DNA of 64,000 nt from Callorhinchus milii (taxonomy: Eukaryota): positions 1-64,000 of the forward strand of contig NW_024704798.1 of NCBI RefSeq assembly GCF_018977255.1, in the 5' to 3' direction. Each line of letters starts with the position of its first letter. Within the stretch, counting starts at the first letter, position 1. Below the pieces are notes generated by a model, which worked only from the letters and a program-made list of their open reading frames with translations, was not told the DNA's origin and searched no databases. Of this stretch, positions 2,021-48,368 are shown one piece after another. Made by a program: the position numbers and the translations under genes.

Positions 2021-2029
2021 GTGGATTAA

Positions 2030-15380: not shown

Positions 15381-15540
15381 TGGCTGAAACTGATAGATTT
15401 TTAACAATAGAGGGATTAGGGGATATGGAGATAGGGCAATTTATTACAGATAGGTCTGAAGATCAACCATAATCTTATCAAATGGCGGGGCAGGCTCGAG
15501 GGGCCGAGTGGCCTAAACCTGCTCCAAATTGTTATGTTCT
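15381..15540 (+). mobile_element. CR1 3'-tail insertion specific to duplication unit A
   Basis: ATGGCGGGGCAGGCTCGAGGGGCCGAGTGGCC tail; absent at the equivalent site (~19840) in unit B. Confidence 0.75.
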
Positions 15541-16239
15541 CGATATAAAATTCGACTGAGCTTTTATATTTCACGGTGATTTTCTTGGATGTTTTATATA
15601 CATGTGTCGCCTTTCAGTGCATCATTCTTACAAAACTTTAATAAATTTGAAAGCTTGTATTTGCTTCTCTTCCCTTTCTCTTTTACCGTCTCTTTTTCGA
15701 GAGCAGCCACAATGTTTGAAGCGGAACCTCATCACTGTAACGTCAATCACAGGCGTCATCTTTATTGATCTTTGTGAATCTGCTCAAAATCCTCTCAGCT
15801 GCTCGTACATCCTTTATTTAATAAAATGCCCAGAACCGCACTCTGTACTCCACCCAGAATCCTGCTAATTTCATATTTAATTGACATTCATATTTCATAT
15901 TTAAGTGACCTTTTGATATATGGTCTATCGACCGATAATACTCCAAATTTTCCACACTGCCCTGAAACAGAAGCTTTTCCTTCTGTTTCAATATAGAACT
16001 GCAATTCCACTTTTCAGCCAACTCAGCTAAAAGGTCTGTAATTTTAAGCAATTGCCCATGTTGCTCCTGACTGTGACCCACACCCCTATTATGCTATCAT
16101 CAATAATCTATAAATAGCAACATGTCGATTTCAAAACCGTTCATATTATAGTAAAGCAGTGGAGGATCCGGCAAAAACGTCTGTGTAAATCAACTAAAGC
16201 AATTCAGGATTAAATGTAACAGGATTCATCCAGAGCGAT

Positions 16240-16925
16240 ATTGACTGTGTGTTGGCCTGGGTGAGCGTGAGTGTGTGTGTGTAGCCCTGTGTTGAAGTGA
16301 GTGGTTTGTGAGTGTATGTGGGCATTGATGGATGCGAGAGAATCTGGGTTTTTGTGGGTGTGTGCGAATGTGTAAGGTCCTTGTTGAGTGTGAGTGTACA
16401 TGAGTTTTGAACCTGGGTGGATTTGAGTGTGTTTGAGTGTGTATGGATTTCGGTGACAGTGTGTGGGCCTGCATGGAATTTCTTATGTGACAGTGTGTGT
16501 GAGCCTGGATGGAATTCAGTATGTATAATTGTGTGGGAGCCTTGGTGGATGTGAATGTGTAGGTGTGGGATCCTGGTTGTGTGATTGTAAGTAAGTGTGA
16601 GTGGGCCTGGTTGCGTGTGAGTGTGTATGGAACTGTATGGAAGCCTATTTGTGTGAGTTTCGCTGCCTTAATTGATGTAAGGGTGCGTATGTGTTGGCGC
16701 CTGTACGTGTGTGTGCGAGTGTGGATGTTGGTGCGAGTATGTGCGAGTTTGTGTGATCCTAGGTGGATGTTTGAGTGTGTGAGCCTGATGTGGAGTTTGT
16801 GAGTCTGTGTTTGTGTTGTCTGTGTGTTTGGGAACCTGGTGGACATGTGAACGATTGTGGACGTTGGTCGACATGATTGTGTGTGTGAGGGTGTGTGGAT
16901 GTGAGTGTGAATGAATGCGTTTACA
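16240..16925 (+). repeat. GT-rich low-complexity tract (paralog at 20570-21215)
   Basis: Degenerate (GT)n/GTGA repeats in both duplication units. Confidence 0.85.
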
Positions 16926-17503
16926 TACAATGTAAAAGTACGGCTAAGCGTGTGTTTAAGTGAACATTTCCATCCCGGAACAGTTCTGTGTAAGAAGTAT
17001 TTACTTTAAAGGAAATGTAGTATAAAAGGACGCTGCTTACAGCAGAGATGCTGTTGCATGCGGATTGCGATGCTATTCGGTGGAAATGAAAGTATCATGG
17101 AAAGGAACAGGTGCAGCTGACTTGTGCAATTCTAAATGAAACTGCAAATAAAATCCAGTACTAGATTGGGTGGTAGCAATTAATGTAGATTAGTTTGGGA
17201 GCATTAGCGCCTTTTTTTGATCAACCCAGTTTCTGACACGTGTCAACCCATCAAACTGCTTAATACTCACATAACAATCTGATAGTTTATTAATTGATGT
17301 TCACATCGCCTCAAAGAAAGGATGTATCTCTCCTTATTATAGAAGTTGTCTGTGTAATTAGTTGTAAATCATGCCCGCTGTAGCTGACTCATCAGTACAA
17401 CTCTAATCTTTGTTTGAGTTACTTTTTTATGAAACAAAACAGGCAATGCAATGGTAGGGAGGCGCATGCCTAAGAGATAAAGAAACATGGTATTGAGAGA
17501 CAC

Positions 17504-17613
17504 TCATTGACAGGCATTGACGGTGTCCGTCAGGATAAGGGAAAAGTTTACAACACTCGGTTTCCCGCTGGATTTATTAACTTTTCTGGTCAGGGTCTTC
17601 AGTGGGAATGTTT
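17504..17613 (-). pseudogene. Orphan copy of CH4 3' end plus secretory tailpiece ([35 protein letters not shown])
   Basis: Ungapped match to 21798-21907; truncated at the duplication junction with no splice acceptor; internal donor GTAAAC changed to GGAAAC. Confidence 0.88.
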
Positions 17614-18607
17614 AGGCCTATTAGGCCGAGATTACTATTGCATTGCAGCCTGTGAGGTTTATGTCGTTATCAATAACAATGATAAGTATCATTGTGTTTG
17701 GTTTCGTGTCTCTCACACCAGCAGGACGTCCCAATGATTTTCACAGTATAACTGTGAAGAGGTGTATGTGCCAAAGTCGCAGCAGGAATTTGGGCTTAAT
17801 GGTCTCCAATTGAGGTGCTGCACTGTTCAGATTGTCCAGCTCAGCACAGGCAGGAGATAAAGCTCAGTCAATGTATAAAACAGATTGCGCTCTCACTTTG
17901 TGCTATAAATACTCTAACACAGAGCTGCATGTTACTATATTGGAACAGTCATGTGTCTGAAGCTGTATCTTGGTGAGGTGCTGATGAATGTGCGACGGAA
18001 AAAGCTGCTGTTCACTGGAGCGAAGGACCATCTCAAGCGGAACTATCATCGCCTTTAGTGTTCTCAGCAAAGCTGCAACTGAAGTTTGACATTAAATTTA
18101 ACAGCTTTTGTTTAATGCTGAGTTACTGGGAATCTGAATCATTTGGAAATCAACAGCAAGGCACAATTGACACAAAAGGAACAGGAAAGAGGAATCAAAC
18201 AGATCATTGAATTTGTAATATTTTTATTGATGCTTCTGGCAAACAACAGACAGAATCTGGAGATAATATGAAACCGGAGCAGAATCAAAAATTCAGATTA
18301 AAATAAGAGGACAAATTATCTCAGCCACTAACTTTCTGTTTCTTTACACCAATAAAATGGGAAACAGCATAGAGAGAATATCAGAGAGGCGTGACAGTAA
18401 CAACTTCAGTTATTGTTACCTAAAGGCACATTTCTAAAATAAACTAACAATAACAAAAGCCACTAAAGTTCAAGTAGTTGCACAATACAATGTTTAATTT
18501 AAGTGATTTGTACAATGAGTGAAAAATGGCAGCGCGTAATCTTTCACACGACGCTGTTGTTAAGCACAAACGGACGGGACACATCGTTGAAGCTGATCTT
18601 AATTAAT

Positions 18608-18616
18608 TCATTTTAC
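18608..18616 (-). CDS. IGHM: IgH TM2 exon (VK*)
   Basis: Minus strand ttttattttccag|GTA AAA TGA, in phase 0 after TM1a; AATAAA at 18228-18223. Confidence 0.85.
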   Translation of the reverse strand, partial: VK

Positions 18617-18712
18617 CTGGAAAATAAAAATAAAGATGTCATGATATTTAAGGTTGTGTTTATAAGTGTATATCAATTCAAACAGGTAAACACACACAAA
18701 CATACAAACATA

Positions 18713-18925
18713 CGCCTCATAATAATCCCTCAAAAAAACAAAAAAAATTGGTCATTTTGAATCCATGACTGTTTGTCGGACATTGCTGTGCACAATTGGC
18801 TGCCGCGTTGGCCCACAAATATACACTCAATTCACATCACAGTATGTACTGTGAAGCGCTTTGTGACGTCCTCCCGACGTGAAAAGCGCTATATCAAATG
18901 CAAGGAGTATTATTTTTATCATTAT
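18713..18925 (+). mobile_element. 5'-truncated SINE in the TM1a-TM2 intron, specific to unit B
   Basis: Same core and tail as 7128; absent from the equivalent region of unit A (~14420). Confidence 0.85.
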
Positions 18926-19255
18926 TATGCACACACACAAGGATACACAAGAGTCCAACTGATTCTGTGTGAATTTGTATTTGTCTGCTGGGGCTGACAC
19001 AGACAGTAATCCTTGCACCTTGCCTGTGTCTATAGCAGGTGAGCATATGCCAGGTGTGATAGGGTGTGCAAGGGAGATGGGATATTAGGAACACCCTATA
19101 CACAGCCCAGTCACAAGAATCTTGGCCTGTAGGTAGAGTTTGAGTTTGACAACAGAGTGGTTGCAATGAGCTTCACTATTAGGCTTTTCATGCACCGAAT
19201 ATTTAACAGCAGCTGTTGCACGACATCGTGGCCTCAATGCATTTGCTCTCCTCAC

Positions 19256-19386
19256 CTTAAAAAGAGTTACGGTAGCGCTGTAGAATATGTTCAGGAAGAA
19301 GAGGATGATGAAGGTGGAAGCAGTAGGCCAGAGATTATCACACTGAACTTCTTGAAATCCTTCCAGCATCATCTCGTTTGGCAAAT
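19256..19386 (-). CDS. IGHM: IgH transmembrane exon TM1a: (D)[43 protein letters not shown]
   Basis: Matches the IgM TM signature NLWxTASTFIxLFxLxxFYSxTVTLFK; acceptor cctcacag, donor AAG|gtgagg; phase fits the CH4 internal donor at 21859. Confidence 0.92.
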
Positions 19387-21702
19387 CTGTGAGGATATAA
19401 AAAGGGAAAAATCTTCAGAGCGCATTGACACCTCAGACATTTCTTATTTTTCCTGTTATATTATTAACGTATTTAGAGATTCCGAGTTAATTAAGGGCCC
19501 TCTCCGTCTATTAAACAACACTGAACTTCATGCCATTTCTTCCAAACTTTTAATTCAAAGGCAAATGAATAAAAACATTATTTTATCGTATACTCCACTC
19601 AATATAGATTCCGCGGAAGAATTTGAGGAACACTTTGGGAAAGCTCAATTTGTGGAAATGCAGAAAGAAGGAAGTTCTCCCATTGAGACTCTTCTGGTAG
19701 TAAAAGGACAGATCTACTCCAATCCTTCAATTCCACCTTTCTTTCTGCCCTATTGCAAGTTCACATCGTCTCTGTTCAAATATTATTTGAAATTCCTTTA
19801 CATTATAATGCTGAGGTGAAGATTTCTCTATTCTAAACAATTCTCGATATAAAAATCGACTTTGCCATTATATTTTACAGTGATTTTACTGGACCTCTTA
19901 TACCCATTTTTATGGATACTATCGCTTTTCACTGTATCAGCCTTTCAAAACTTAAATACATTTGAAAACTTGTATTTGCTGATCTTCCCTTTCTGATTTA
20001 CCTGCACATTCCTTTCGAGAGCTGCCGCGCTATGTGAAGCTATTCCTCAACACATTAACGTCAGTCACAGGTACCATCTCTATTGACCTTTGTGAAACTT
20101 CCCAAAACCCTCTCAGGAGCTCTTATTTCCTTTGTTTAATAAAATGCCCAGAACCGCACACTGTACACCACCCATAATCCTGGTAAATTTATATTTAATT
20201 AACAGTCGATTGCCCAACAAAAAACACAGGGTCCATTTTTACTCCATTTGATATGCGCTCCCATCGACTATTACTCCAGGTTTTCCACTCGTCACTTATA
20301 ACAGAAGCAGTTACTGAATATTGAACTGCAATTCCACTTTTCGGCCAACTCAGCTAAGGGGTCTGTAATCTTATACAATTGCCAAAGTTATTCCTGACTG
20401 TGTCTAACAACCCTATTAGACCATCATCTCTTTTATCATGGATAGCCATGTCGATTTCGCAATCGTTAATATTATTGTAGGAACCGGCACAAACGTCTCT
20501 GAAATTAACTAAAGTAAATGAGGGTTAAATTTAAAAAGGTTCATCCATAGCGCTATTGATTTTGTATTGTCTTGGGTGAGTGTGAGTCTGTGTGTGTGGT
20601 CATTCGTGGATGTGTATATATGTGTATATGTGCGTGTTCCTGCATGTATGTATTTGTGTGGCGACATGGGTTGATGTAAGCGTGTGTGAGTGTTTGCCTT
20701 GGTGGATGTAAATGTGTCAAGTTGTCTGTGCAATTAATTGTAAATATGGGTATGTGAGTGTGTTTAAGTGTGCGTGGGCCTGGGTGAGTGTGAGCTTACG
20801 GGGGCCTGGATGGAAGTGGGTGTGTGTGAGTATCTGTGGGCCTTAATGGAAATCAGTGTGAATGTGTCGGCCCAGTAAGTGTGTGTGCGGAAATGTGTAG
20901 GGGATTGTTTGGATGTGGATATAAGTGAGTTTGTGTGAGCCATGGTGGATGTGTGAGTGGGTGTGAGTGTGTGCGGGACTGGGTGGACGTGAGTTTGCGT
21001 CTGCAAGTGTCTGCATGTGTGGACCTGCGGGGATGTGTGAGTGTATGTGTGTGTGGCCCCTGGGAGGATGTGAGTTTGTGTGTCTGTGTCTGTGTGTGTA
21101 TGTGTGTGTGTTTGTGAACATGGATGGACACGTGAGAGTGTGTGGGCCTGGATGGATATGATGGTGTGTGTGAGTATGTGTGGATGTGAATTTGAATGAA
21201 TGCATTTTGTTACAATGTACGTGTATGGCTAAGCTTATGTTTAAATGAACATTTTCCTGTATTCGGATCAGTTTCAGTGTGAGAAGTATATACTTTTAAT
21301 GGAAATGTAGCAATAAAAAGCCGGAGTTTACGTCCGCGATGTTATTACACGTGGAATGCGATGCTATTCGGTGGGAAAGAAAATATGTTGAAAAGGAACA
21401 GGTGTAGCTTCACTGTGCTATTCTGAATCAAACTGCAAATAAAGTACAGTCTGAGTTGAGCTGTAGCAAGTAAAGTAGAATAATTTCGGACGGGTAACTT
21501 TTTTTTGGTCACCCGGGTGTCTGACACCTGCAAACCCATCACGATGATTAAGAGTGTACAAACCAACCTGACTGTCCTATTAACTTGATGCTAACATCCC
21601 CCCAAAAATGAGTGTATCTCTCCTTTCTATGGAATGTGACAGTGAAGTTAATTAATTGCAAATCATCCTCTCTGTACCTGTCACATCAATGCAACTATAA
21701 TC

Positions 21703-21708
21703 TTTATT
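21703..21708 (-). terminator. Poly(A) signal of the secreted IgH transcript
   Basis: AATAAA on the minus strand ~90 nt after the secretory stop codon. Confidence 0.7.
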
Positions 21709-21797
21709 TGAGTTACTTGTTCATGAAAACAAACAGCCAATGCAATGGGAGGGAGGCGGTTGCATAAGAGAATAGGCAACATGGTATTGAGGGTCAC

Positions 21798-22189
21798 TCA
21801 TTGACAGGCATTCACGGTGTCCATCAGGACAAGGGAAATATTTACAAAACTCGGTTTACCGCTGGATTTATTAACGGATCTGGTCAGAGTCTTCATTGGG
21901 AAAGTTTCATGTCCGACCACACAGGAGTAGGAGTTTCCTCTGCCCCAGTCTCCGGCTGAGATGGACAACATGCTGTACATGGAGTAGTTGCGATCTGCAC
22001 TTTCTGCCATCACATCAGTGTTCTTGTATTTACTGCCATCAATCAACTGGTCATTCTCAGTCCACTGCACAAAGATCTCTTTGGGAGCGAAGTCCTTCAC
22101 CAGGCAGGTGAGGGTGACAGACTGCTGAGCAGACAATTCTTCTGCCGACGGGAGGAGGAGATACACTGAAGGTCGTTTCACGTGCTCCA
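21798..22189 (-). CDS. IGHM: IgM-like CH4 exon with secretory tailpiece GKPSFVNISLVLMDTVNACQ*
   Basis: C1-set domain (PSVYLL...VTLTCLVKDFAPKEIFVQW...YSCVVGHE); acceptor ttccaacag; internal donor G|GTAAAC at 21860/21859; tailpiece has an N-x-S site and penultimate Cys. Confidence 0.95.
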
Positions 22190-22446: not shown

Positions 22447-22758
22447 CTGTCTTCTTAAACGTCTTTTCTCTGATGGGAGATGGTATATCATCATGGCTGG
22501 CGACACAGAAGTATTCTTTACCACTGTTCCAGTCTAATACAGAAATGTTTAATTTACTGATCACTTTCTGAGGCTCAGTGGCAGAAGTTTTCCCATATCC
22601 AGACTGCAAATGTGTATTTCCTTGTGTCCAAGTCACGTTGACGTGAAGTGGTGCATTAACCACGACACATGTTAGCGTTACAGAGGAATCCATCAAAACC
22701 TGTCGCTGTGCAGGTGGCAGGAAATAGATCTTGACACCTCCAGAGGGATCCTCGCATT
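22447..22758 (-). CDS. IGHM: IgM-like CH3 exon (ECEDPSGGVKIYFLPP...TLTCVV...YFCVASHDD...KKT)
   Basis: 312 nt, phase 1/1, acceptor ttttctag, donor G|gtgag, canonical C-W-C spacing, extra N-terminal Cys. Confidence 0.93.
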
Positions 22759-23391: not shown

Positions 23392-23712
23392 CTGAGGTGA
23401 TGTTCTTGACAATGATGGTGTGGGTGGGTTCATGGGAAACCTGGCAGGTATAAACCGCGCCACTCCTCCACTCTCTGGCGGGGACAGTCAGGCGGCTGCT
23501 GGTGCTGAATGTCACGTTGTCTCCTTTAACCGAGGGAGAACTCACAACACCTGAGGTGATGGGCAGCCAGTCTCTTAGCCATTTAACCCGGAGTATGTCC
23601 GGATGAAAACCAAATGCTAAGCAGACAGCAGTGGCCTGGTTGTGCCTGGTGATGTCTTCAGGGGAAGTTTGTGTGAGGATAACAACTGGCGGCGATGGCT
23701 TAGGTACATTAT
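23392..23712 (-). CDS. Second CH2-like constant exon (DNVPKPSPPVVILTQ...AVCLAFGF...YTCQVSHEPT...KNITS)
   Basis: 321 nt, open, acceptor ctattccag, donor G|gtggg; about 77% aa identity to the 24437-24766 exon by manual alignment. Confidence 0.92.
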
Positions 23713-24436: not shown

Positions 24437-24766
24437 CTGTTGGGGTGGTGATGTTCTTGACAATGATGGTCTGGGTGGGTTCATGGGACACCTGGCAGGT
24501 GTAAACCGCGCCAGTGCTCCACTCTCTGGCGGGGACCGTCAGGCGGCTGCTGCTGCTGAATGTCCCGTTGTCCTCTTTAGCCGAGGGAGAGGTCACAACA
24601 CCAGAGTTGATGGGTTCCCAATCTTTTAGCCATTTAACACTGAGTTTGTCCGGTCGGAAGCTGTTTATTGAGCAGACAGCAGTGGCCTGGTTGTGTATTT
24701 TGATGTCTTCAGGGGAAGGCTGTGTGAGGAACACAACTGGGGGCAATGGTTTCGGTTGTACATTCC
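24437..24766 (-). CDS. First constant exon, CH2-like rather than CH1-like (GNVQPKPLPPVVFLTQPSPEDI...AVCSINSF...YTCQVSHEPT...KNITTPT)
   Basis: 330 nt, open, acceptor gtatttcag, donor G|gtagg; in phase with the J donor; only the two canonical Cys. Confidence 0.93.
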
Positions 24767-29297: not shown

Positions 29298-29351
29298 CGT
29301 CAGTCACCGTCACCGCTGTGCCTTGTCCCCAGTAGTCAGGGCTGCCGCAGG
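29298..29351 (-). CDS. IGHJ: IgH J segment: CGSPDYWGQGTAVTVTD
   Basis: WGQGT motif; donor G|gtaaga; RSS on plus strand CACTGTG (29352-58), 23-bp spacer, GCAACAACT (29382-90). Confidence 0.93.
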
Positions 29352-29727
29352 CACTGTGCTACAGTCAGTGGGCTGTTCACTGCAACAACTGCTGTGTGGG
29401 CAGAGCACACAAACACAATATTACTGTAAATGTTGGCTTCTCCAAACCACACACAGATCACGATATGTGTCTGTCATGTTCTGAAAACAATTGCCCGGCG
29501 CTGTGTTTACCTTTTAAATGTTTGTGTCTTTGTCAGTTTGCTGTGTTTCTGCCAAACCACGTTTCTTCTCACCAACAGGTGGAAGATTAAGTCCGATGTT
29601 CTATGTCGTTTAAAATCTCGTGAAATCCTCGGGGTTCAGCAACATGTTAGAAATACCAAATCCCCGCAATTTCAGTGGGTGCCACACAAGCGAGTAGTGA
29701 CAGAGATTAGCTGGTTTGTTGTTGAAG

Positions 29728-29796
29728 GGTTTTTGTATTGGCAGTTAATGCTGTGGTCCATGTATATACACAGTGATACACAACATGACAAAAACT
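29728..29796 (-). other. IgH diversity segment D2 (29756-29768, TATATACATGGAC) with 12/12 RSSs
   Basis: Plus strand GGTTTTTGT-12-TGCTGTG [D] CACAGTG-12-ACAAAAACT. Confidence 0.93.
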
Positions 29797-30109: not shown

Positions 30110-30187
30110 GGTTTTTGTATGAGGAGGTAACTGTGTGCAGCATTGTGACCCACTGTATACACAGTGATACAGTCCCATACAAATACT
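30110..30187 (-). other. IgH diversity segment D1 (30148-30159, TATACAGTGGGT) with a 12-bp V-side RSS and a 22-bp J-side RSS
   Basis: Plus strand GGTTTTTGT-22-CATTGTG [D] CACAGTG-12-ACAAATACT. Confidence 0.93.
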
Positions 30188-30600: not shown

Positions 30601-30639
30601 AGTATTTGTAGGAGTTCAGCCCAGTTCCCTCGCACTGTG
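30601..30639 (-). other. V-segment 23-bp RSS
   Basis: Minus strand CACAGTG-23-ACAAATACT immediately after the YYCAAD codons. Confidence 0.95.
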
Positions 30640-30948
30640 AGTCCGCTGCACAGTAGTAGGTCGCGGTGTCCTCCACTCTCGGGCTTTTGATGATCAGATC
30701 GAAGATGCGATTGGAATTCTCTCTGACGACAGTGACGCGGTTTCCAAAACCGGACTCGAAACTGTTGCTGGAGTAGGTGTCAGAAGTGAGGAGCTTTTCC
30801 CGCTGCTTCCCGGGAAGCTGCCGGTACCAGAACATACAGTAGTAATAGGAGCTGTAAAATCCGCTGCTTCTGCAGGTCAGTCTCAGGGACTGGCCGGTTT
30901 TCCCGGTGAGAGTCGGCGGCTGTGTCATCACCACAGCGGCCTGGACAC
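30640..30948 (-). CDS. IGHV: IgH V exon, single-domain-like: VQA/AVVMTQPPTLTGKTGQSLRLTCRSSGFYSSYYYCMFWYRQLPGKQREKLLTSDTYSSNSFESGFGNRVTVVRENSNRIFDLIIKSPRVEDTATYYCAAD
   Basis: V-set C-W-DTATYYC motifs, open frame, acceptor ccttacag, followed by a 23-RSS. Confidence 0.95.
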
Positions 30949-31064: not shown

Positions 31065-31110
31065 AGGAGAAGACCGCCAGCAGCAGACTGAGAGAAATCA
31101 GGGACCTCAT
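31065..31110 (-). CDS. IGHV: IgH V leader exon MRSLISLSLLLAVFS(C)
   Basis: 46 nt, donor T|gtaagt, 116-bp intron, joins in frame to the V exon; hydrophobic signal peptide. Confidence 0.93.
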
Positions 31111-34200: not shown

Positions 34201-34827
34201 GTGTTAATAATATATAGTACATACATGTAATACACTTGTATCACAGAGTGTAATGTAACAGGGATATACTGGCTCATTATCCTGAGAATAATAGGTTTGC
34301 CTCTTTCACTAAGCTTGTGCTGTGGATTTTCATTCCCTGGAGGGTTAAGCCGGTGTCAAACTATCTGAATTTTCTGCCGTATTCTTACATATAATATAAA
34401 TAAAATTAGCATCTAATACAAATGCAGGCAAGTTCTCAGTCTCGTTATATTGTTATATAGGTTTGGGCTTTTTTGTGTCCCTTGCAATTCAAGACTGCGA
34501 ATTTAAAGGAAACCTTTGTTTGCTGATGCTGTAGAACAATCAATGTTCAAGCACAGTTTATCAGCAAAATGCTGTTCAAGTCATTGCATTTTATGTGTAA
34601 AGTCTTTCTGCTGAGCGCACTCAGGAAAGACGGTTCTCACAGGAGGTGTCAGGCGGCCTTCAGGTGGGGCGGAAACTCAGAGCACAATTGTCAGGAAGCA
34701 GCTGTGATGGTGTACAGTCAGTCATTGATCAGATTCCTGCCCTCACACCGCACAGCCACAGCCTGAGCCTTCATACAGTGTTCCCCATCACACCTGCCAC
34801 AGCAGGAACAGCAGCAACAGCAGCACC

Positions 34828-35150
34828 TGGTCATCTCGTACTATCTGGTCATCTCACACTGTCTGGTCATCTCACACTGTCTGGTCATCTCACACTCTCT
34901 GGTCATCTCACACTCACTGGTCATCTCACACTCACTGGTCATCTCACACTGTCTGGTCATCTCACACTTTCTGGTCATCTCACACTGTCTGGTCATCTCA
35001 CACTATCTGGTCATCTCACACTGTCTGGTCATCGCACATTGTTTGGTCATCCCACACTGTTTGGTCAGCTGAAACTGTCTGGTCATCTCAAACTGTCTGG
35101 TCATCTTAAACTGTCTGTTTGTCTCAAACTGTCTGATTATCTCAAACTGT
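34828..35150 (+). repeat. 18-bp minisatellite (CTGGTCATCTCACACTGT)n, copy 1
   Basis: Directly visible; produces the (SGHLTL)n ORF. Confidence 0.95.
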
Positions 35151-37731
35151 CGGACGAAATAATAAGAGTAATAATAAAAAGTAACATTAATACGTAAAAA
35201 TGTTTCTAATTGACCCAATTTCTTACATGTCTCAAACTTCTTCACAGGTTTTCTTTGAAACACAGTAAAGTCTCTTTCATTTCAGCTTCTCTCAAGGATT
35301 CTCCTTACTCAGCTCTGCGATTTGCTGTAGGCTCACCGACCACGCCTCTCTCTTTGGTGACTGACAACCATCTGATTGATATCGCAACTGCTCTATGTGC
35401 CCCACATTGGTTCTTTGGAAATCACAGGCCTTCTGTCGCTTGCTTTATGCTTTATTGAAACAATGGAGAAAAATGTTTGTCTTATTATCCTGTGGTGTGA
35501 TTCAGAAATCTGCTGACATTCAAAAATATTATGTAAAGTCACTAGAATTTCATGCATTACATTTTTGCCGCCTGGAGCAGAAACATTCTGCATCTGGCGA
35601 TATACCTGGGTTCAGAGTCCGGATCACAGCTGGGTGGAGGTGGATGTCCCACCTACTCATGTGGCCTTCAAGAACCTGTCATTCGCCTCTATGTCTTGGC
35701 TAACGTTTAGTTGCTTTGAGTCAGCCAACTAATCTCAAAGATAAGTTATCTTGTAATTGTATAATGCAACAAGATAATCTTGAATTTCACTACTAAGCAT
35801 ATCCCTTGCTGCTTAATCATAATAATAATAAACCTTGTTTTTCTGTAAAGCATTTATTGTGCCGGAACGACAATGAATTTTGGAGGCGACTGCAGCATTC
35901 GCATCAATGTCCCTCAATCAGTCGTTAAGCAAATTATCAATTTAATCTCGATATTTTTGTTGGTAGAAACGCCCTTCCCTTTTCCAGCAATTTCACGTTA
36001 GCATTAATGTTCAACAGAAAAAGGAGACTGAATCGCTATTTTTCATCTGAACCAGGTGAACACCAGCACCAACAATGCAGCAGAAACCAATCACTGCTTT
36101 ATTGTGTCAATTTAAACGGTATTATATCTGGTCGTCTCTGGCCCAAACCGAGGGAAACACTGAGCCGCCCATCATATGTCAGCACACGCCAGCAGTCATA
36201 TCACATCACTCAGCCTCCAGCATAGTCGAGTGCACAGCCCTCAGCATCGTCCACCACACAACACCAATCATATCACATCATACAGTCTCCAGCATAGCCC
36301 AAGACACAGCCATCAGCATAGCCCAGCTCACAGCCTGCAGCAAAGCCCAGCATACAGCAAGAATCATTTCACATCACACAGCACCTGGCATAGCCCAGCT
36401 CACAGCCACCAACATAGCTCAGCTCACAGCCAACAACATAGCTCAGCTCAGAGTCTGTAGCATAGCCCAGCAGACAACAACCAGCACAGCCAAGCTCACA
36501 GCCTGCAGCATAGCCCAGCACACAACAACCAGCACAGCCCAGCTCACAGCCTGCAGAATAGCCCAGCACACAACACGAATCATTTAACATCACACATCCC
36601 CCAGCACAGCCCAGCTCAAAGCCTCCATCCAGCATGAGACACCCAGCACAGCCCAGACTACAGATCGCAACTTAGCCTCGCGTACAGCCCCCATCATTTG
36701 CACAATAACACGCAGTTTCCTCGTGGCCCGAGGGTAGGGTGACAGTATCATATGATTCAAAGGCGGGGAGACTTACAAAATATTGAGCTGACGACAGTTC
36801 CTGCTTCTGTCAGACCAGGATAAGGTTTTGCATTAATGGGTGTGTTTCCTTGACCAACGGGTGTCTTTGACAATCGTAATGTTCTTCTTTATTTTCTTGC
36901 TGATTGAACGTAGTAAAGATTTACCTCAAAGATTCACCGGCTCACTTTACCTCACCCCTTAACCCAATGGCCCCTCACTTCACACACTCAAACCCACACT
37001 CACATTCACACAACATCAGACACAAACACTCTCAGATCCACACATAGGCCTCACACAATCCTCAAACACACACCCTCGCACACGCACACTCATGCACAAA
37101 CATTCATACACAAAGTCTCACACGTACACATTAACACACACTGTAAAACATAATCCTCTCTCTCTCCCACAACATCAGGCAATCCGTCACGTTCCCCCAC
37201 ACGATGAAACACACTTCAGACACACAGTGTCAGGCACACACACCATCGCTCACACACTTCTCAAGACATACTCTGCAAGGATTATTATTATATTTTTATA
37301 CACTCACACACAAACGTCTCACACACAAACTCGCATACCCTCTCTCACACACCCTCACAACCAACTTAGTGTTATTAATCCACAAGGACTTAGAAAATTC
37401 TTCACTTAATAAGAAATATAAACGTTGTCATTTGAATTATCAAAAAAATATAACACGCGTATGTATAACGTACACAAATGTCAGTGTGATAGGTTTCCGC
37501 AAGGATACCATACAAGTTGCTAAAAATGATTAATTTACGTAAGTTGCACCGCTCAGGGAGAGCACATGTTATCCACATGGCTGAATCTCGTTCGACATCA
37601 TGTAATAAATCTTCTAAGTCAAGCGTTCACGTTGGTATAAATCAGGCTTTGTTTTTTTGCTCTTGAAACCCATATATTTATTCTGATCTCCTGTCTATAC
37701 GGAGACGAGGTACCATCGGTTCACTGTCGAG

Positions 37732-40012
37732 ATGACAATAGCACCAATACACAGGATACAAAACATTTACTATCCGGTTCTCGCTGCCATTGGAGTTCCT
37801 GGCAAGTTGTTTAACTTAATCGTTAGTTAGACTAGTTTGCAGTAAAGTTTGCAGCCTGACTCAGGTGGTAGCATTTCTCCTCTGAATCAGAAAGATGTGG
37901 TTTGCAGACCCCGACCCATTGATCTTTGCTGGAGGATCCGCGATTTGTATACGTATTTAACAAGTAATGTCCTACTTGATCCTTCAGATATCAAAGATTC
38001 TGTGACACAGCTAAAAAAAGGGCGGATTTGATTGCGGGTTGTTGGGCACACCTACTTGCAAAAAACACTTCGCGGTATGCTTGTTAATTTACTTTATATC
38101 TGTTTGTCTGTTTTTAATTGCCGCATTTGCCAACAAATAGGCTTTTCAGTAAACTTAAACGCTTTGCAAAAATAATAATATTCCTCACATTTGATATTGC
38201 ACTTTGTAAGTATTCCATACAACGCAAAGCGTTGCAGAGAATATAGTAAACAGAGAATTGTCTTTGCACTGATAGATTAAACTCAGCAGCCACTTGCGCA
38301 TTGCAGAATACCACAAACAACCATGGATGGAGCGGCCAGATGTTCATTTTAATGATTATTATCCTCGGAAATGTGAACTACCAATTGACTAACAAACGGG
38401 TGTCTGCTTACTGCTCGGTAAATGGAAATATTAAGCGAAGCGTATTGATATGTTTATAAGTAGTGAATAGTGTCGTATCAAATGCAAGTGAAATTGCTAT
38501 TATTATTATGTGTTACATAGCGGGAATAAGAGAAGATGATCGGAAAATCGCAACTGATAATATTATATTAAGCTATGGGTTTAGCCAATGATTATCCATA
38601 CGTTTGACTCATTTCTTAGTGTTCTTGCCTCTCAGTTAGAAGTTTGCAGGTTGGAGCCCACAGCACCTCATTGAGCTCAGAGTCCGAACCGTGATAGTCC
38701 ACGCTTTAGGCCTGTGGCGTTTTCTGGCAACTTAACCACAATTTTAAACTGTAAAACTGTGTGGGTTTGGCTGCCCCATTTCGCCCACAAAATGTACCGT
38801 TAATTCACTTTTCAGGTTATTTTGTGAACCGCTTTGAGACCTCACAACGAAACGTTAAATTGTTGTGTCGAATGCAAGCATTTTTATTAATTATTATTAA
38901 TATTATTACTATTAATGAGGGCCGGATGACAGCCACATAAGGAACAGTTTTATGATTGTCTTTCAGAAACATAACTTATAACAATTATATTGAAATCCGA
39001 TGTTTAAAATTGAGTACCTTATTTGATATACAATTCCAACTTTCGATTGGCAGCAAAAAATATCGGAATTGTCAAGCAATAATACCTTCAGCGATGAGAA
39101 ATCTCTCTCTCTCTCTCTCTTTCTGTCATTATCTCTGTGTGTGTGTGTCTGTGTGTATGTCTGTATCTGGCTTTGTCTGTATGTGTCGACTGCTTTCGAT
39201 TTCTTGATGCTGTATTAATTGCAGATGTGTTAATTAAACGCAAGTTGTTGTACTGTGGTGATGGGCATTTATCTGTCTCGCTCTCTCCAGCAAACCTGGT
39301 GTCGATTGAAATTCTGTCTCGTGGGCGGTGTGGACTCTCCAAATGTATCAGTCACTATCTGGTGGCCATGTCCACAGCAGATCTGTTGGTGATTATCACA
39401 TCAGTGATTTTCTATCCAGTTATTCCTTCTTATTCACCCAATTCATTCCTGTCCATCACACCTGTTTGTAGGCTAGTTATAGTCTTGTTGATTTCATCAA
39501 CGTCAACTTCTGTCTTGTTAACTGTGGCTTTCACCTTTGATCGATATGTGGCCATTTGTTGCCAAAACCTGAAAACAAAATATTGTTCAGAAAAAACTTC
39601 TGTTCCAGTGATAACGGTATTGACTGCGCTGTTCGTAGTGATAAGTATTCCCTGGGATTTTATATTTGAACCAAAGTATATCATTAACGATATACCGTGG
39701 GGTTGCGAACCGAAAGCAAGCTATTACACTCTCTGGTCCTCTCACACTGTCTGGCCATCTAACACTCTCTGGTCATCTCACACTGTCTGGTCATCTCACA
39801 CTGTCTTGTCGTCTCACACTCTCTCGTCATCTCACACTCTCTGGTTATCTCACACTGTCTGGTCACCTCACACCGTCTGGTCCTCTCACAGTGTCCGGTC
39901 ATCTCACACTGTCTGGTCATCTCACGCTGTCTGGTCATCTCACTTTCTGGTCATCTCACAATGTCTGGTCATCTCACAATGTCTGGTCATCTCACACTGT
40001 TTGGTCATCTGA
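37732..40012 (+). pseudogene. Truncated GPR139/142-like GPCR duplicate: exon 1 37732-37801, exon 2 from 39291, homology ends ~39730 (after TM4), then reads into the 18-bp array
   Basis: Exon 1 MTIAPIHRIQNIYYPVLAAIGVP; exon 2 close to the 47422 exon up to EPKASY; TM5-7 missing; V-to-E change in TM1. Confidence 0.85.
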
Positions 40013-40075
40013 AACTGCCTGGTCATCTCAAACTGTCTGGTCATCTCAAACTGTCTGTTTGTCTCAAACTGTCTG
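39731..40075 (+). repeat. 18-bp minisatellite (CTGGTCATCTCACACTGT)n, copy 2, at the duplication junction
   Basis: Directly visible; the following flank matches 35150 onward. Confidence 0.95.
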
Positions 40076-42219
40076 ATTATCTCAAACTGTCGGATGAAAT
40101 AATAAGAGTAAGAATAAAAAGTAACATTAATACGTAAAAAAATTTCTACTTCACCCAAATTCTTACATGTCTCAAACTTCTTCACAGGTTTTCAAGGATT
40201 CTCCTTACTTATCTCTGCGATTTGCTTTAGCCTCAGCGACCACGCCTCTCCCTTTGGTGACTGACAATCATCTGATTGATATTGCAACTGCTCTATGTGC
40301 CCCACACTGGCTCTTTGGAAATCACAGGCCTTCTGTCGCTTGCTTTATGCTTTATTGAACAATGGAGAAAATTGTGTGCCTTAATGTCCTGTGGTGTGAT
40401 TCCCAAATCTGCTGACATTCAAAAATATTGTGTAAAGTCACTAGAATTTCATGCCTTACATTTTTGCCGCCTGGAGCAGACACATTCTGCAACTGGCTAT
40501 ATACCTGGGTTCAGAGTCCGGATCACAGCTGGGTGGATGTGGATGTCCCACCTGCTCATGTGGCCTTCAATAACCAGTTATTCTCCTCTATGTCTTGGCT
40601 ATCGTTCAGTTGCTTTGAGGCAGCCAACTAAACTGAAAGCTACGTTATCTTGTTATAGTATAATGCAACAAGATAATCTCGAATTCCACTACTAAGCATA
40701 TCCCATGGTGCTTAATAATAATAATAATAAACATTGTTTTTCATGTAAAGCACTTAATGCGGTGGAATGACAATGGATTTTGGAGGCGACTGCAGCAGAC
40801 GCATCAATGTCCCTCAATCAGTCATTAAGCAAATTATCAATTTAATCTCGATATTTTTGTTGGTAGAAACGCTCTTCCCTTTTCCAGCAATTTCACGATA
40901 GCATTAATGTTCAACAGAAAAAGGAGACTGAATCGCTATTTTTTTATCTGAACCAGGTGAACAACCGCTCCAACAATGCAGCAGAAACCAATCACTACTT
41001 TATTGTGTCAATTTAAACGGTATTATATCTGTTCGTCTCTGGCCCAAACCCAGGGAAACACTGAGCCGCTCATCATATGTCAGCACACACTAGTAATCAT
41101 ATCACATCACTCAGCCTGCAGCATAGCCCAATACACATCCCTGAGCATCGTCCACCACACAACGCCAATCATATCACATCATACAGCCTCCAGCATAACC
41201 CAAGACACAGCCATCAGCAAAGCACAGCTCACATTCTGCAGCACAGCCCAGCACACAGCCTGCAGCAAAGCCCAGCATAAAGCAAGAATCATTTCACATC
41301 ACACAGCCCACAGCATAGCCCAGCTCACAGCCACCAATACAGCCAAGCTCACAGCCTCCATCCAGCATGAGACACCCAGCACAGCCCAGACTACAGATCG
41401 CAACTTAGCCTCGCGTACAGCCCCCATCATGTGCACAATAACACGCAGTTTCCTCATGGCCCGAGGGTAGGGTGACAGTATCATATGATCCAAAGGAGGG
41501 GAGGCGCATAAAATACTGAGCTGACGACAGTTCCTGCTTCTGTCAGACCAGGATAAGGTTTTGCATTAGTGGGTGTGTTTCCTTGACCAACGGGTGTGTT
41601 TGACAATCTTAATGTTCTTCTTTATTTTCTTGCTGTTTGAACGTCGTAAAGATTTACCTCAAAGATTCACCGACTCACTTTACCTCACCCCTGAAACCAG
41701 TGGCCCCTCACTTCACACACTCAAACCCTCACTCACATTCACACAACATCAGACACAAACAATCTCAGATGCACACGTAGGCCTCATACAATCATCAAAC
41801 ACACACCCTCGCACACGCACACTCATGCATAAACATTCACACACAAAGTCTCACACGTACACACTAACACACACTGTAAAACCTGTTCCTCTCTCTCTCC
41901 CACAACATCAGGCAATCCGTCACGTTCCCCCACACGATGAGACACACTTCACGCACACAGTGTCAGGCACACACACCGTCGCTCACACACTTCTCAAGAC
42001 ATACTCTGCAAGGGTTATTATTATATTGTTATACGCTCACACACAAACGTCTCACGCATACACTCGCATAGCCTCTCTCTCGCACCTTCACAACAAACTT
42101 AGTGTTATTAATCCACACGGACTTGGAAAATTCTTCACTTGAAAAGAAATATAAAACTTGTCATTCGAATTATCAAAAAATATAACATGCAGGTCAATAA
42201 TGTACACAAATTTCAGTTT

Positions 42220-43190: not shown

Positions 43191-44395
43191 CCAAATCTTG
43201 TTTAAAATCCTACTGTAACCTATCTTGTTCAGATTTGCAACCTGCTACATTCATTAGGTTACTGTCAGATATAAACTTAGCCAATGTGCTTGTGACCGCT
43301 AGTTCCAGATATTTCAAATATTAAACAAAAGAGGTCCAAATGCAAATGCTTATTGAACTCCTCTAGTAATAATTTCCCAGTCTGATGACATTCTTCGTTT
43401 TACCATCCTCTGGTCTCTTGCCGTCAATCAATTGGATAGTCAGGATAGTATATGCGAAACACAGACAGCTGGACATACACACAGACAAAGAGAGACATGC
43501 ATGCAGAAAAAGGAAGGGGAAACAGACGCGAGTGGGAGAGAGAGGGATCCAGTCCTTCATTGCATTGTCCCAAATTGGGGCTTGAACACACAAAATGCTG
43601 ATTCAAGAGGTGAGAATGCTGCAACGAATCCAGGGTGACACCTAATGTTTAGCAACTGATAGCGCAATTGATGCCACAATCTATTGAATGTAGGGAATTC
43701 ATGTTGGAATTATTTGGCACACAAAACAAAACAGTCAGTTAAATTTACAGTATATTTGCGAAGCGTTTCGAGAAGTCTTGAAGAAATAAATGGTTTATCA
43801 AAGTCAAGGATCATTATTATTAATGTGGTGTTATTATTCTGAAACATTTCCACAAACCTCGATGATCTGCAACAGTGCCTTCACTGGGGTCCCAAAGCCT
43901 TGTTTCTTGTCAATCTGGACGCAACACACTCCAGAATTAGTTCAAGGTGAGTGCGAGTCTCCAGGGAGAGAGTGTGCCTTCAATTTCATTCACTGTGTGG
44001 TTTACATTATTATTATTATTATTACATATAATAATTTGTAAATGGCTACATACGTTGACCACTGTTTCTGGTTTGGATAGTTTAATAACAGCAAACAGCA
44101 TTTACATAGTATACTGAACGCAATTTGGCCTCTCGATGTCGAAACCGTGGCGATAGGATTCCGCATGGATGCCATAACATGTTGCTAAAAAAAATTAATT
44201 TACGTAAGTTGCACCGCTCAGGGAGAGCACATGTTTCTCACATGGCTGAATCTCGTTCGTCATCATGTAATAAATCTTCTGAGTCAAGCGTTCACGTTGG
44301 TATAAATCAGGCTGTGTTTTTCGCTCTTGAATCTCATATAGTTATTCTGATCTCTTGTCTGTACCGAGCGGAGGTACCATCGGTTCTCTGCGAAG

Positions 44396-46083
44396 ATGAC
44401 AATTGCGCTAACACACAGGATACAAAACATTTACTATCCGGTTCTCGCTGCCTTTGGAGTTCCTGGCAAGTTGTTTAACTTAATCGTTAGTTAGACTAGT
44501 TTGCAGTAAAGTTTGCAGCCTGACTCAGTTGGTAGCACTTTCTCCTCTGAATCAGAAAGATGTGGTTTGCAGACCCAGACCCGTTGATCTTTGCTGTAGG
44601 TGCCGCGATTTGTATATGTATTTAACAAGTAAAGTCCTACTTGATCCTTCAGATATCAAAGATCCTGTGGCACAATAAAAGAAAGGGGGATTTGTTTGGA
44701 GGTTGTTGGGCAACAACTACTTGCAAAAAACTTCGCGATATGCTTCATAATTTACTTTATATCTGTTTGTTTGCTTTTAATTGCCGCGATTGCCAGCAAA
44801 TAGGCTTTTCAGTAAACTCAAATGCTTTGGGATGTTTGGACGCCGAAAGGTGGCGATGCCTCAAATGTTAGTCAGTCTGTACCGTACTATTAATATATAT
44901 ATATTAATGGATTCCTGTCGCTCGGTGGTAAGAGCAATAACATCGCAAGCGAGAGACCAGGGTTCAATTCCCGGGAGTGCGAAATGTTGCGAAATGGAGA
45001 TAGTAATCCGTACAAAAAATCCAAGTGAGTCTGTGAGACATTTTTGTTTGGAATTGACTGCCGCGATTCATCCACAAACGTACAGTCAAGTCACTTTACA
45101 AAAATAATAATATTCCTCATATTTGATATTGCACTTTGTATGTATTCCATACAACGCAAAGTGCTGCAGAGAATATAGTGCACAGAGAATTGTCTTTACA
45201 CCGATAGATTAAACTCGGCAGCCATTTGCGCATTGCAGTATACCACAAACAACCATGGATTTGGCGGCCAGATGTTTATTTTAATGATTATTATCCTAGG
45301 AAATGTGAACTACCAATTGACTAACAACCGGGTGTCTGCTTACTGCTCGGTAAATGGATATATCAAGTGAAGCATTTTGATATGTCTATAACAAGTGAAA
45401 AGTGTCATATCAAATGCAAGTAAAATTACTATCATGATTATATATTACACAGAGGGAAAAATCGCAACTGGTTTTATTATTTTAAACTGTGGGTTTAGCC
45501 AATGATTATCCATACGTTTGACTCATTTATTAGTGTTCTTACCTCTCAGTTATAAGTTTGCGGATTGAAGACCACAACATTACATTGAGCTGAGGGTCCG
45601 AACCGTGATAGTCGATGCTTTTGGCCTGTGTTGTTTCCTGGCAATTTACCCACAATTTTAAATTGTAAAACTCTGTGCGTTTGGCTGCCGCATTTCGCCC
45701 ACAAAATATACAGTTAATTCACTTTCAGGTTATTTTGTGAACCTATTTTAGACCTCACAACGAAACGTTAAAGCGTTGCATCGAACGCAAGCATTTCTAT
45801 TAATTATTATTAATAATTTTATAATTAATGAGGGCCGGATGACTGCCACATAAGCAACAGTTTATGATTGTCTTTCCGAAACATAACCTGTAAGAATTAT
45901 ATAGAAATCATATGTTTAGAATTGTGTACCTTTATTTGATAAACAATTCAACCTGTAGATAGGCAGTAAAAAATAATCCAAATTGTCAAACTATAATACC
46001 TACAGCGATGAGAAATCTACCTCTGTGTGTCTCTGCCTGTCTTTTACTCTCTCTCTCTCTCTCTCTCTGGCTCTTTCTCTCTC

Positions 46084-46120
<37 letters not shown>

Positions 46121-48368
46121 GTCTGCGTGTATGTCTGTACCTTTCTTTGTCTGCATGTAGTTTTGTATCCCACACTATATAAATATGTGTGTCTCTCTCT
46201 ACCTATGTAGGTCTGTCTATGAGGATCTCTCCATCTCTCTGTCTGTTTGTGTGATATTTTCTATGTATCTCGCCCTGTCAGTTGATATCTCTGTATCTGA
46301 ATCCATCTCTGTATATCTCTTTAACAATCTGTCAGTCCGTGCTTGTCGCTATCGCTGTGATTCTCTGATTTCTCTGTCACTGCATTGCTCAGTAATTATG
46401 TATGACTTCATGTGTATTTCTCTCGTGCTGTCTGCTGTGCCTCTTTCTGTCTCTGTGCGTATATTTTTCTGTCTGTGTCTCTGTTTCTCTATCTGGGTGT
46501 GTATCTCTCTCTGTGTCTGGGTGTTTCTCGCTGCGTGCGTTTGTGTTTCCCTCTCTCTCTGTCTTTGAATCTCTCTCTCACGCTGTCCATGATTGTGTTT
46601 CTTTCTCCACCGGTCTCTCTCTCATTCTTTCTGATAACGATGATTCTTTTTTGCGCATTGTTTTTGCGTCTCTCTGTGTCTGTCTGTGTCAGTGAATCGC
46701 TCTTCTGTTATCCTTTTAGAAATGATTGACAATTTCTGCTGAATTTGTTTTTCTGTTTTTACGTCCGGGACAGACCACATACACACAGCGAAACAGCGTT
46801 CGAGGGCACAAGCAACATTTATGTGTTTCCGATCGAGAAACACAACCCGTAGGAGTATAGAAACCCTGCATTAAAACTGCATCATTTTAATGCAGTTTCA
46901 CTCCATTTCAGTTACGATACAGACTCTAAACGGGCAATGTAAAAAGCATAAAATTTTTAAAATAATGATAGAATCCCTGACAAGATATCTCTCTTTGCTT
47001 CTGTTCTAACAGCTTCTACCATTGTCTGTCTCTAACTTGCGCGTTATCTCTGTACGAGTTCGTATCAAGTGCTCCAAGTCGCTTGAAGGGCTCTATATAA
47101 ATCCAAGTGATTGTTGCATCTATCTCTCTCTCTGTCTGTTTGTCTCTGTATCTTTCTGTCTGCGTGTATCGATACCTGTCTCTCTCTTTCCCTGTTTTGG
47201 TACCTTTGCATGTCAGGCATTTGCGAGTCAGGTTTTGTGCGATCACACATCGAATCCATTAGGTTAGATTTTGAGGTGGGAGAGAAAGTCAACTGTTCTT
47301 CATTCAGAGAGTCACTGCTTTCGATTTCTTGATACTTTATTGATTGAAGCGACTTGCTAAGTAAATGCAAGTTGTTGTATTGTTGTGATGGGCATTTCTC
47401 TGTCTCTCTCTCTCTCTCCAGCAAACCTGGTGTCGATTGTAATCCTGTCTCGTGGGCGGTGTGGACTCTCCAAATGTATCTCTCGCTATCTGGTGGCCAT
47501 GTCCACAGCAGATCTGTTCGTGATTATCACATCAGTGGTTTTCTATCGAGTAATTCTTCCTCATTTCCCGAATTCATTCCTGTCCATCACACCTATTTGT
47601 GCGCTCCTTATAATACTGGCTGCTTCTACAACGTCAATCTCTGTCTGGTTAACTGTGGCTTTCACCTTTGATCGATATGTGGCCATTTGTTGCCAAAATC
47701 TGAAAACAAAATATTGTTCAGAAAAAACTTCTGTTACAGTTATAGCGGTATTGAGTGCGCTGTGCGTTGTGATAAACATTCCCTGGGGTTTTATAGTTGA
47801 ACCAAAGTACATAATTAACGATATACCGTGGGGTTGTGAACCTAAAGCAAGCTATTTCACTTCTCCAACTTGGGCAGCGTTTGACACAATTAATTATATT
47901 TTAACCCCAATTCTCCCATTCGTTATGATTTTGTTGCTCAACGCCCTGACTGTCAGGCACATACTGGTGGCCAGCGGAGCCCGCAATAGATTGGGGGGAC
48001 ACAGCAATAGTTACAAGAGTCGAGGTGCGACTGACAGTGATCCGGAGATGAAGAACCGAAAAAAATCCATCGTTTTACTCTTTGCTATTTCCACCAGTTT
48101 TATATTATTATGGATGACATATGTTCTATGTTTCTTGTATTTTAGGATTTCTAAGACATATTACGTTACAAACCCAGATGACCCGATTTATATGACCTTG
48201 CACACTGGTTACATGCTGCAGCTTTTGAGTTCCTGCACAAACACTTGTATTTACGCGGCTACACAGACGAAATTCAGGGAGGAACTCAGCAAAGTGGTGA
48301 CTATTCCTTTCCTTCTAATTGTTAGATTATTTCATTTGGAAAAGTTGTTTGCGGCTCTGATAACTTGA
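44396..48368 (+). CDS. Intact two-exon class A GPCR, GPR139/GPR142-like (exon 1 44396-44465, exon 2 47422-48368; 338 aa)
   Basis: MTIALTHRIQNIYYPVLAAFGVP|ANLVSIVILSRGRCGLSKC...FTFDRYVAIC...SSCTNTCIYAATQTKFREEL; seven hydrophobic segments; GC donor (G|gcaagt), acceptor ctctccag. Confidence 0.88.

Follow-up and report, generated by a model that had tools for sequence, protein, structure and literature searches.

The window analysed here (the whole stretch of 64,000 nucleotides, forward-strand positions 1 to 64,000 of contig NW_024704798.1 of Callorhinchus milii, NCBI RefSeq assembly GCF_018977255.1) carries on its minus strand a unit of approximately 12 kb composed of a leader exon, V, D1, D2 and JH segments, two tandem CH2-like exons, CH3, CH4 with a tailpiece, and a transmembrane exon (TM1). 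This architecture is that of the classical cartilaginous-fish immunoglobulin heavy-chain (IgH) cluster, i.e. V-D1-D2-JH-C. The V gene is very probably the germline V gene of a CH1-less, IgM-derived holocephalan heavy-chain-only antibody (HCAb) cluster of the ratfish 'COS5' type ('holocephalin HCAb'). Its resemblance to the variable domains of camelid heavy-chain-only antibodies (VHH) is supported, as judged from the sequence, as a case of convergence and not of inheritance. The features of the cluster are:

31065-31110, minus strand: leader exon, MRSLISLSLLLAVFS plus 1 nt; donor gtaagt.
30640-30948, minus strand: V exon, encoding the leader end and the mature V domain AVVMTQ...YYCAAD; it reads (C)VQA followed by AVVMTQPPTLTGKTGQSLRLTCRSSGFYSSYYYCMFWYRQLPGKQREKLLTSDTYSSNSFESGFGNRVTVVRENSNRIFDLIIKSPRVEDTATYYCAAD.
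30601-30639, minus strand: V recombination signal, with heptamer CACAGTG, 23-nt spacer and nonamer ACAAATACT.
30110-30187, minus strand: D1 with its signals, AGTATTTGT-12-CACTGTG, coding TATACAGTGGGT (30148-30159), CACAATG-22-ACAAAAACC.
29728-29796, minus strand: D2 with its signals, AGTTTTTGT-12-CACTGTG, coding TATATACATGGAC (29756-29768), CACAGCA-12-ACAAAAACC.
29298-29390, minus strand: JH with its 23-nt-spacer recombination signal sequence (RSS); coding part 29298-29351, (x)CGSPDYWGQGTAVTVTD, with WGQGT; donor gtaaga.
24437-24766, minus strand: exon A, the first constant exon; CH2-like (Pfam C1-set, 1e-21), with only two intradomain Cys.
23392-23712, minus strand: exon B, the second constant exon; CH2-like, a tandem duplicate of exon A.
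22447-22758, minus strand: CH3 exon, starting with ECEDP, whose Cys is a candidate for the bond between heavy chains; 69% identity with conventional CH3.
21798-22189, minus strand: CH4 exon with the secretory mu tailpiece (...GKPSFVNISLVLMDTVNACQ, then stop); 84% identical to conventional CH4.
19256-19386, minus strand: TM1 exon; acceptor cacag, donor gtgagg.

All reading frames of the cluster are open, every splice site is of the GT/AG type, and the RSS layout (spacers of 23, 12-22, 12-12 and 23 nt) is intact. The leader intron is in phase 1 and the V exon acceptor is ttacag; D1 sits 470 bp downstream of V, and the J-to-exon A intron, beyond which lie four C1-set exons, is 4.5 kb long. The unjoined V, D1, D2 and J segments with their intact RSS permit three joining events, and several paralogous clusters exist. 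The V exon matches the Pfam V-set family (E=2.6e-15), and a tblastn search with the V domain as the query revealed no second V in the 64-kb window. Close homologues of both the V and the C region all come from C. milii. The leader peptide is identical to that of the conventional C. milii IgM cDNAs P0015 and P0016, and a TATA-like sequence (TTAAATAG) is located at approximately 31208. One N, at 25423, falls in the intron between J and exon A, and a gap of 132 N at 53495-53626 is far upstream of the cluster; both are outside the coding parts.

The constant region is plainly, to judge from its exons, a derived IgM in which CH1 was lost and CH2 duplicated. Exon A shows 70-81% identity to the CH2 and 23-28% to the CH1 of conventional C. 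milii IgM, and exon B 67-80% to CH2, so that the two together span 67-81% to CH2 and 23-32% to CH1 (conventional C. milii IgM P0015 and P0018). The two exons share 82 of 110 residues, with a ratio of nonsynonymous to synonymous substitution rates (dN/dS) of 0.42. Using three holocephalan CH1 domains as tblastn queries, no CH1-like sequence was found in the whole 64-kb window. Two CH2-like exons following J, taken with this lack of a match, indicate that CH1 was physically replaced by a second CH2 and is not merely skipped; with no CH1 in the cluster, there is also no Cys for bonding a light chain. Inside the CH4 exon, a G/GTAAA donor serves to make the membrane form. Minus-strand features of window 13390-21910 show a tandem duplication of the cluster's 3' end with a period of approximately 4.3 kb: the block at 17.36-21.9 kb (CH4 end, tailpiece and TM1) is repeated at 13.39-17.6 kb with 78-90% identity. 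In this copy, CH4 is represented by a truncated fragment at 17507-17611 (83% over 35 aa), and another TM1-like exon lies near 14878.

Within the V exon, the sequence-only reading had singled out a stretch in which counting from W36 gave Y37, Q44, R45 and K47, the positions of the camelid VHH hallmarks in framework region 2 (FR2), together with a Cys at position 33 of the first complementarity-determining region (CDR1). This stretch, window:30794-30838(-), runs from C33 to K47 and translates to CMFWYRQLPGKQREK. The phmmer alignment of ...yyCMfWyRQlPGKqrekl... with the human heavy-chain variable (VH) sequence VH3, ...syAMsWvRQaPGKglewv..., is gap-free, and the numbering anchored on it (C33 M34 F35 W36 Y37 R38 Q39 L40 P41 G42 K43 Q44 R45 E46 K47 L48 L49) is identical to the earlier count. 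The four FR2 residues, the Cys at position 33 (followed by M34) and the coordinates were thus all borne out, with the strand being minus. CDR1 exceeds that of the species' conventional VH by one residue, which leaves the counting back from W36 unaffected. In that conventional VH the comparison gave V37, G44, L45 and W47, versus Y37, Q44, R45 and K47 here. The core interface residues Q39, Y91 and W103 are kept in the window V and J.

When the 31-residue CDR1-FR2 stretch was searched against PDB, approximately 50 of the best 60 chains were named nanobody, VHH, sybody or single-domain antibody, and per-domain scores reached about 15-17 bits against VHH FR2 versus 8-9 bits against conventional human VH. 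The VHH FR2 matched in PDB include yaMgWYRQaPGKeRElv, WYRQAPGKQREMV and the Cys-bearing rCMgWFRQtPGKEREgi. An AlphaFold2 (AF2) model of the V exon only (predicted local distance difference test, pLDDT, of 82) found mostly nanobodies, and also VH, among its top Foldseek matches in PDB (query TM-score, TMq, of 0.8-0.9); since Foldseek cannot tell VHH from VH, this match is consistent with the VHH resemblance but non-discriminating.

The polar FR2 is shared by other V domains of holocephalans. In an alignment of 10 polar-FR2 and 4 conventional holocephalan V domains, 11 of 98 columns fully separated the two groups (14, 37, 40, 44, 45, 47, 50, 52, 58, 61 and 89), and these include all of 37, 44, 45 and 47. 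The hypergeometric chance of finding all four hallmark positions among them is approximately 9e-5, a value to be read with the caveat that positions 44 and 45 helped to define the two groups. Grouping by the attached constant region is independent of FR2, and the association persists under it. Among sequences linkable to a constant region, Q44 and R45, with a residue other than Trp at 47, occur in all three CH1-less chains, and all CH1-bearing VH have V/I37-G44-L45-W47 (four holocephalan, four elasmobranch IgM, four IgW and one human). The conventional IgM cDNAs (P0015-17 of C. milii and P0031 of Hydrolagus) read WVRQVPGKGLEWLL; their J contains no Cys, and their CH1 includes the light-chain Cys (LLPYCGQ). 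A germline-joined VDJ with WKRQFPGKQRENFL is attached to a single CH2-like domain in gene model P0021/P0024 of C. milii, and in P0070 a rearranged V with a polar FR2 (MFWYRQLPGKQRDQLL...YWGRGTKVTVTE) is directly joined to a CH2-like domain. No genomic contigs are on record for P0007 or P0070, and the correlation between FR2 and CH1 therefore draws on cDNAs and gene models. The features of the window cluster are retained by at least four paralogues of the V gene (84-96% identical) and four of the C region. Other polar-FR2 V subfamilies of the C. milii genome lie outside the window (P0006, P0008, P0059, P0001 and P0021/P0024). Of these, P0006, P0008 and P0059 have an extra Cys in FR3 at Kabat 82b (IIKCPTV), P0059 has a J without Trp103 (YVGRGT), and P0001 has an extra Cys in CDR2.

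The germline Cys33 of CDR1 is accompanied by a second germline Cys, whose codon starts at the third nucleotide of J, and the two are a likely disulfide pair tying CDR1 to CDR3. Conventional J segments and the J of P0070 are Cys-free, and P0070 is also without Cys33. The V-only model has neither the G strand nor CDR3, so such a bridge is beyond what it can show. In the literature outside the texts of Rast 1998 and Anumukonda 2022, no earlier description was traced of the germline Cys33-J Cys pair, or of the exact residue-for-residue match to llama FR2. The hard-wired Cys pair may thus be a modest novelty of this V subfamily.

The way in which such a chain might be produced can be outlined. RAG would join V-D1-D2-J, and the VDJ exon would be spliced directly to the first CH2-like exon. 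BiP binds CH1, and in camelids, heavy-chain disease and L-chain-deficient mice the release of CH1-less chains is well documented (PMC2150980). Being without CH1, and without the light-chain Cys, the chain would be expected to escape BiP retention in the endoplasmic reticulum and leave the cell as a heavy-chain homodimer. The homodimer could be held together by the Cys at the start of CH3, polymers might form through the Cys of the retained mu tailpiece, and the transmembrane form could act as a B-cell receptor. Antigen would be bound by the single V domain, whose former VL-contact face, made polar by V37Y, G44Q, L45R and W47K, would keep it soluble. In this subfamily, Cys33 and the Cys at the 5' end of JH would be able to tie CDR1 to CDR3. 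From these features we infer light-chain independence, solubility and the C33-J disulfide.

Some observations weigh against reading the cluster as a functional HCAb gene of convergent origin. In the 390 bp preceding the ATG no canonical Ig octamer (ATGCAAAT) was seen, only the TATA-like site. The linkage between FR2 and CH1 comprises three CH1-less sequences, which are phylogenetically related. One of them, P0070, is only presumably the 1998 ratfish cDNA, to judge from its old UniParc id UPI0000114065. Trimming of more than 2 nt of J during joining deletes the J Cys codon, and the C33-CDR3 bridge may therefore exist in only a fraction of rearrangements. Finally, the maximum-likelihood (ML) root of the V tree, with long outgroup branches, falls among polar-FR2 V genes with weak support.

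The missing octamer is one of the points that could suggest that the cluster is a non-functional relic whose features have no present function; the others are the tandem duplication of its 3' end, with a truncated CH4 copy, and the absence of the exact protein from the protein collection searched. This is improbable, given that each of the nine coding exons has an open frame, that the splice sites are canonical and the RSS good, and that exons A and B show a dN/dS of 0.42. Moreover, the paralogues mentioned above (at least four V genes and four C regions) keep these features, and P0070 in the protein collection is itself a rearranged, CH1-less, polar-FR2 sequence. The pseudogene reading was rejected on these grounds.

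If the cluster is functional, its V could still be an ordinary VH that pairs with a light chain, the FR2 changes being lineage-specific drift irrelevant to pairing. The unaltered core interface residues Q39, Y91 and W103 would agree with this, as would the finding that heavy-chain-only IgG can be secreted with a mouse VH that has no VHH-type changes (PMC2150980), from which it follows that the FR2 changes are not strictly needed after loss of CH1. A pairing VH is, however, at odds with a cluster that has no CH1 and hence no light-chain-bonding Cys. Drift, for its part, would have to account for changes exactly at 37, 44, 45 and 47, with hydrophobic residues turned into Tyr, Gln, Arg and Lys, while V/I37-G44-L45-W47 is kept in every CH1-bearing VH examined. 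This explanation is thus very unlikely.

The ancestry of the V gene was approached through sequence identity and phylogeny. The window V is 59-63% identical to conventional holocephalan VH, 36-44% to elasmobranch IgM and IgW VH and 38% to human VH3, but only 27-32% to T-cell receptor (TCR) alpha/beta V, shark new antigen receptor V (VNAR) and V-kappa (27-30% to TCR V). In the tree, all VH, including the polar-FR2 type, were split from TCR, VNAR and V-kappa (outgroup sequences checked against PDB) with support of 90/98, or 99/97 with the hallmark columns removed. The sequence-only reading had named grouping with TCR V as the result that would speak against convergence; by both phylogeny and identity, the V falls with VH and away from TCR V. 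Trees in which all polar-FR2 V, or all holocephalan V, form one clade were not rejected (p-AU, from the approximately unbiased test, of 0.37-0.40). With the ML root weakly placed among polar-FR2 V, the direction of change is read from parsimony and not from the tree.

That root position leaves room for the opposite polarity, in which the polar FR2 is ancestral, the single-domain type represents an older VH state and the GLEW-type pairing VH is derived. With TCR, V-kappa and VNAR as outgroups, the root lies among polar-FR2 V and the GLEW VH form one nested group (41/98; with the hallmark columns removed, 90/93). It has also been proposed that the first antigen receptor was a single-domain one (PMC12227049). 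If this polarity held, chimaeras would preserve a relic of a single-domain antibody stage and not a convergent copy of the camelid solution. On the other hand, the outgroup branches are very long (1.1-2.6), with joins flagged as unsafe by the tree tool, and the one-clade trees of holocephalan or polar-FR2 V were, as stated, not rejected. In leader and frameworks, the V resembles holocephalan IgM VH far more than it does any elasmobranch VH, the C region derives from IgM by loss of CH1 and duplication of CH2, and elasmobranch IgM and IgW VH share V/I37-G44-L45-W47 with human VH. An ancestral polar FR2 accordingly has little probability. Least credible is a TCR-type or TCR-associated V (a V-delta supporting NAR-TCR, or one like VH-delta/TAILV) with a WYRQ FR2 inherited or adapted to TCR pairing: WYRQ at 36-39 is the usual TCR V motif (as in A6 TCR alpha and beta), but the V lies inside a closed V-D1-D2-JH-Cmu cluster with a WGQGT J and mu C exons in cis, no TCR C or FGXG J occurs in the window, QREK at 44-47 is VHH-like and not TCR-like, the V shares 59-63% identity with IgM VH and 27-30% with TCR V, from which it is split at 90/98 to 99/97, and a protein search with the V region, set to lengths of 220-700 aa, returned Ig-type chains only (a weak negative for sharing with TCR, the search being word-based and of limited sensitivity). 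These DNA data bear on rearrangement within the cluster, and a trans-rearrangement to TCR delta is still conceivable on them.

Convergence on the camelid solution, as the sequence-only reading had proposed for a cartilaginous fish, is therefore supported: the V is of the VH type, it belongs to an IgH cluster without CH1, and, since it is VH-derived and the other VH examined keep V/I37-G44-L45-W47, its VHH resemblance appears convergent rather than inherited. Heavy-chain-only antibodies would then have independent origins in camelids, elasmobranchs (IgNAR) and chimaeras. The chimaera form, like camelid VHH, would have begun from an ordinary VH (here IgM VH), with the same four FR2 positions changed and three of them identical to llama. 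This would be about as clean a molecular convergence as DNA can show, and it argues that there are very few routes to a light-chain-independent VH. Chimaera V genes may thus represent a third natural single-domain scaffold, and this slowly evolving genome, which has clusters of both the conventional and the CH1-less kind, offers a natural experiment on the substitutions needed. The value of the present analysis lies in the confirmation and full annotation of one cluster, the principle itself not being new.

The remainder of the window contains intronless open reading frames (ORFs) of rhodopsin-family seven-transmembrane (7TM) receptors flanking the Ig cluster, at 47361-48365 (+) and 57958-58893 (-) (Pfam 7tm_1, E=1e-15 and 9e-15) and at 39098-40009 (+), the last being partial (1e-5). 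The 7TM ORF DNA is 88% identical between 39272-39571 and 47403-47702. Segmental duplications with 85-94% identity were identified upstream of the Ig cluster (35292-36043 and 40192-40943; 37653-38811 and 44317-45725), and 18-nt tandem arrays at 34827-35151 and 39726-40091 are associated with them. Arrays of a 22-nt satellite unit, ATGTCACCATTACAGTCCAGTC, at 2029-3586 (71 copies) and 50806-52179 (62 copies) bracket the region and create long spurious ORFs.

In comparison with known systems, the likeness to camelid VHH concerns the V domain above all. Both are derived from conventional VH and both have positions 37, 44, 45 and 47 all changed; Y37, Q44 and R45 are identical to those of llama VHH (WYRQAPGKQRE), and the Cys33-M34 motif with a Cys partner in CDR3 is shared with dromedary VHH. 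Position 14 is no longer Pro in either (VHH often have Ala14), and neither mature chain contains CH1. In camelids, however, the CH1 exon is present but skipped, whereas here CH1 is physically absent, with a second CH2 instead. Unlike the camelid heavy-chain IgG2 and IgG3, the window chain is of the mu type with the tailpiece retained, and it is encoded by a cluster gene and not by a translocon locus. K47 stands where VHH have Gly, Leu or Phe, and overall identity is approximately 35-40%. Membership of the camelid VHH family was thus rejected: despite the FR2 hallmarks, and although the V would function in the manner of a VHH, the gene belongs to a holocephalan cluster whose C exons are of the mu type and which has no CH1 exon.

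IgNAR, the other heavy-chain-only antibody of cartilaginous fish, has a single V domain with a polar former VL face and, in type II, a CDR1-CDR3 disulfide (PMC3149040), to which the candidate Cys pair of the window V would correspond. The differences are considerable: the window V is 28% identical to VNAR 1sq2 and has a full CDR2 and C'-C'' region, the cluster has two D segments versus three, and its C region is IgM-derived and not IgW-like. Assignment as an IgNAR V was rejected on account of this low identity, the full-length CDR2, the two D segments and the mu C exons; in addition, the C. milii genome is reported to lack IgNAR (PMC3964593).

Conventional C. milii IgM (P0015/P0016, 'secretory form of immunoglobulin heavy chain') shares with the window cluster the leader, the V framework (59-63%), the JH core DYWGQGT.VTVT, similar CH2, CH3 and CH4 domains (67-84% identity) and the tailpiece. 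It differs in having CH1 with the light-chain Cys, V37-G44-L45-W47, Pro14 and YY at 51-52, and in being without both the CDR1 Cys and the J Cys.

The class of CH1-less holocephalan antibodies is already known, having been described in 1998 and discussed as convergent in 2011, and, going by the title of a paper by Anumukonda et al., it was reportedly studied again in 2022. A ratfish IgM cluster with CH1 lost and CH2 duplicated, 'likely ... L-chainless', is credited to Rast et al. 1998 (Immunogenetics 47:234) in the 2011 convergence essay of Flajnik, Deschacht and Muyldermans, where the name 'holocephalin HCAb' is used and the ratfish protein was as yet unexamined (PMC3149040). COS5 of the ratfish Hydrolagus colliei is likewise described as having no CH1-type domain (PMC2150980), and a passage of a 2025 paper uses 'single-domain Hydrolagus IgM V', citing Anumukonda et al. 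2022 (Eur J Immunol 52:247) (PMC12227049). Four criteria for a functional HCAb were set out by Flajnik et al. 2011 (PMC3149040). With respect to the first (no CH1), the window cluster has none; with respect to the second (a way of diversifying a single-V repertoire), its unjoined V, D1, D2 and J could provide three joining events, and there are several paralogous clusters; with respect to the third, it has, at the sequence level, Y37, Q44, R45 and K47 in place of the conventional V37, G44, L45 and W47; and with respect to the fourth (a non-canonical Cys for an interloop disulfide), it has germline Cys33 and the J Cys, which may pair with each other.

The closest relative is thus the ratfish COS5 type, which has the same cluster-type IgH organization, with CH1 lost, CH2 duplicated, and CH3 and CH4 following. 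The window agrees with it in its holocephalan V-D1-D2-JH-C cluster, the absence of CH1, the duplicated CH2 and the mu CH3 and CH4, and differs in being the Callorhinchus copy, one of several paralogous clusters. P0070, probably from ratfish, has the same kind of polar FR2 (WYRQLPGKQRDQLL), and its CH2-like domain ends in ITMPT versus ITTPT of exon A; it is without the Cys33 and the J-start Cys that the window subfamily adds.

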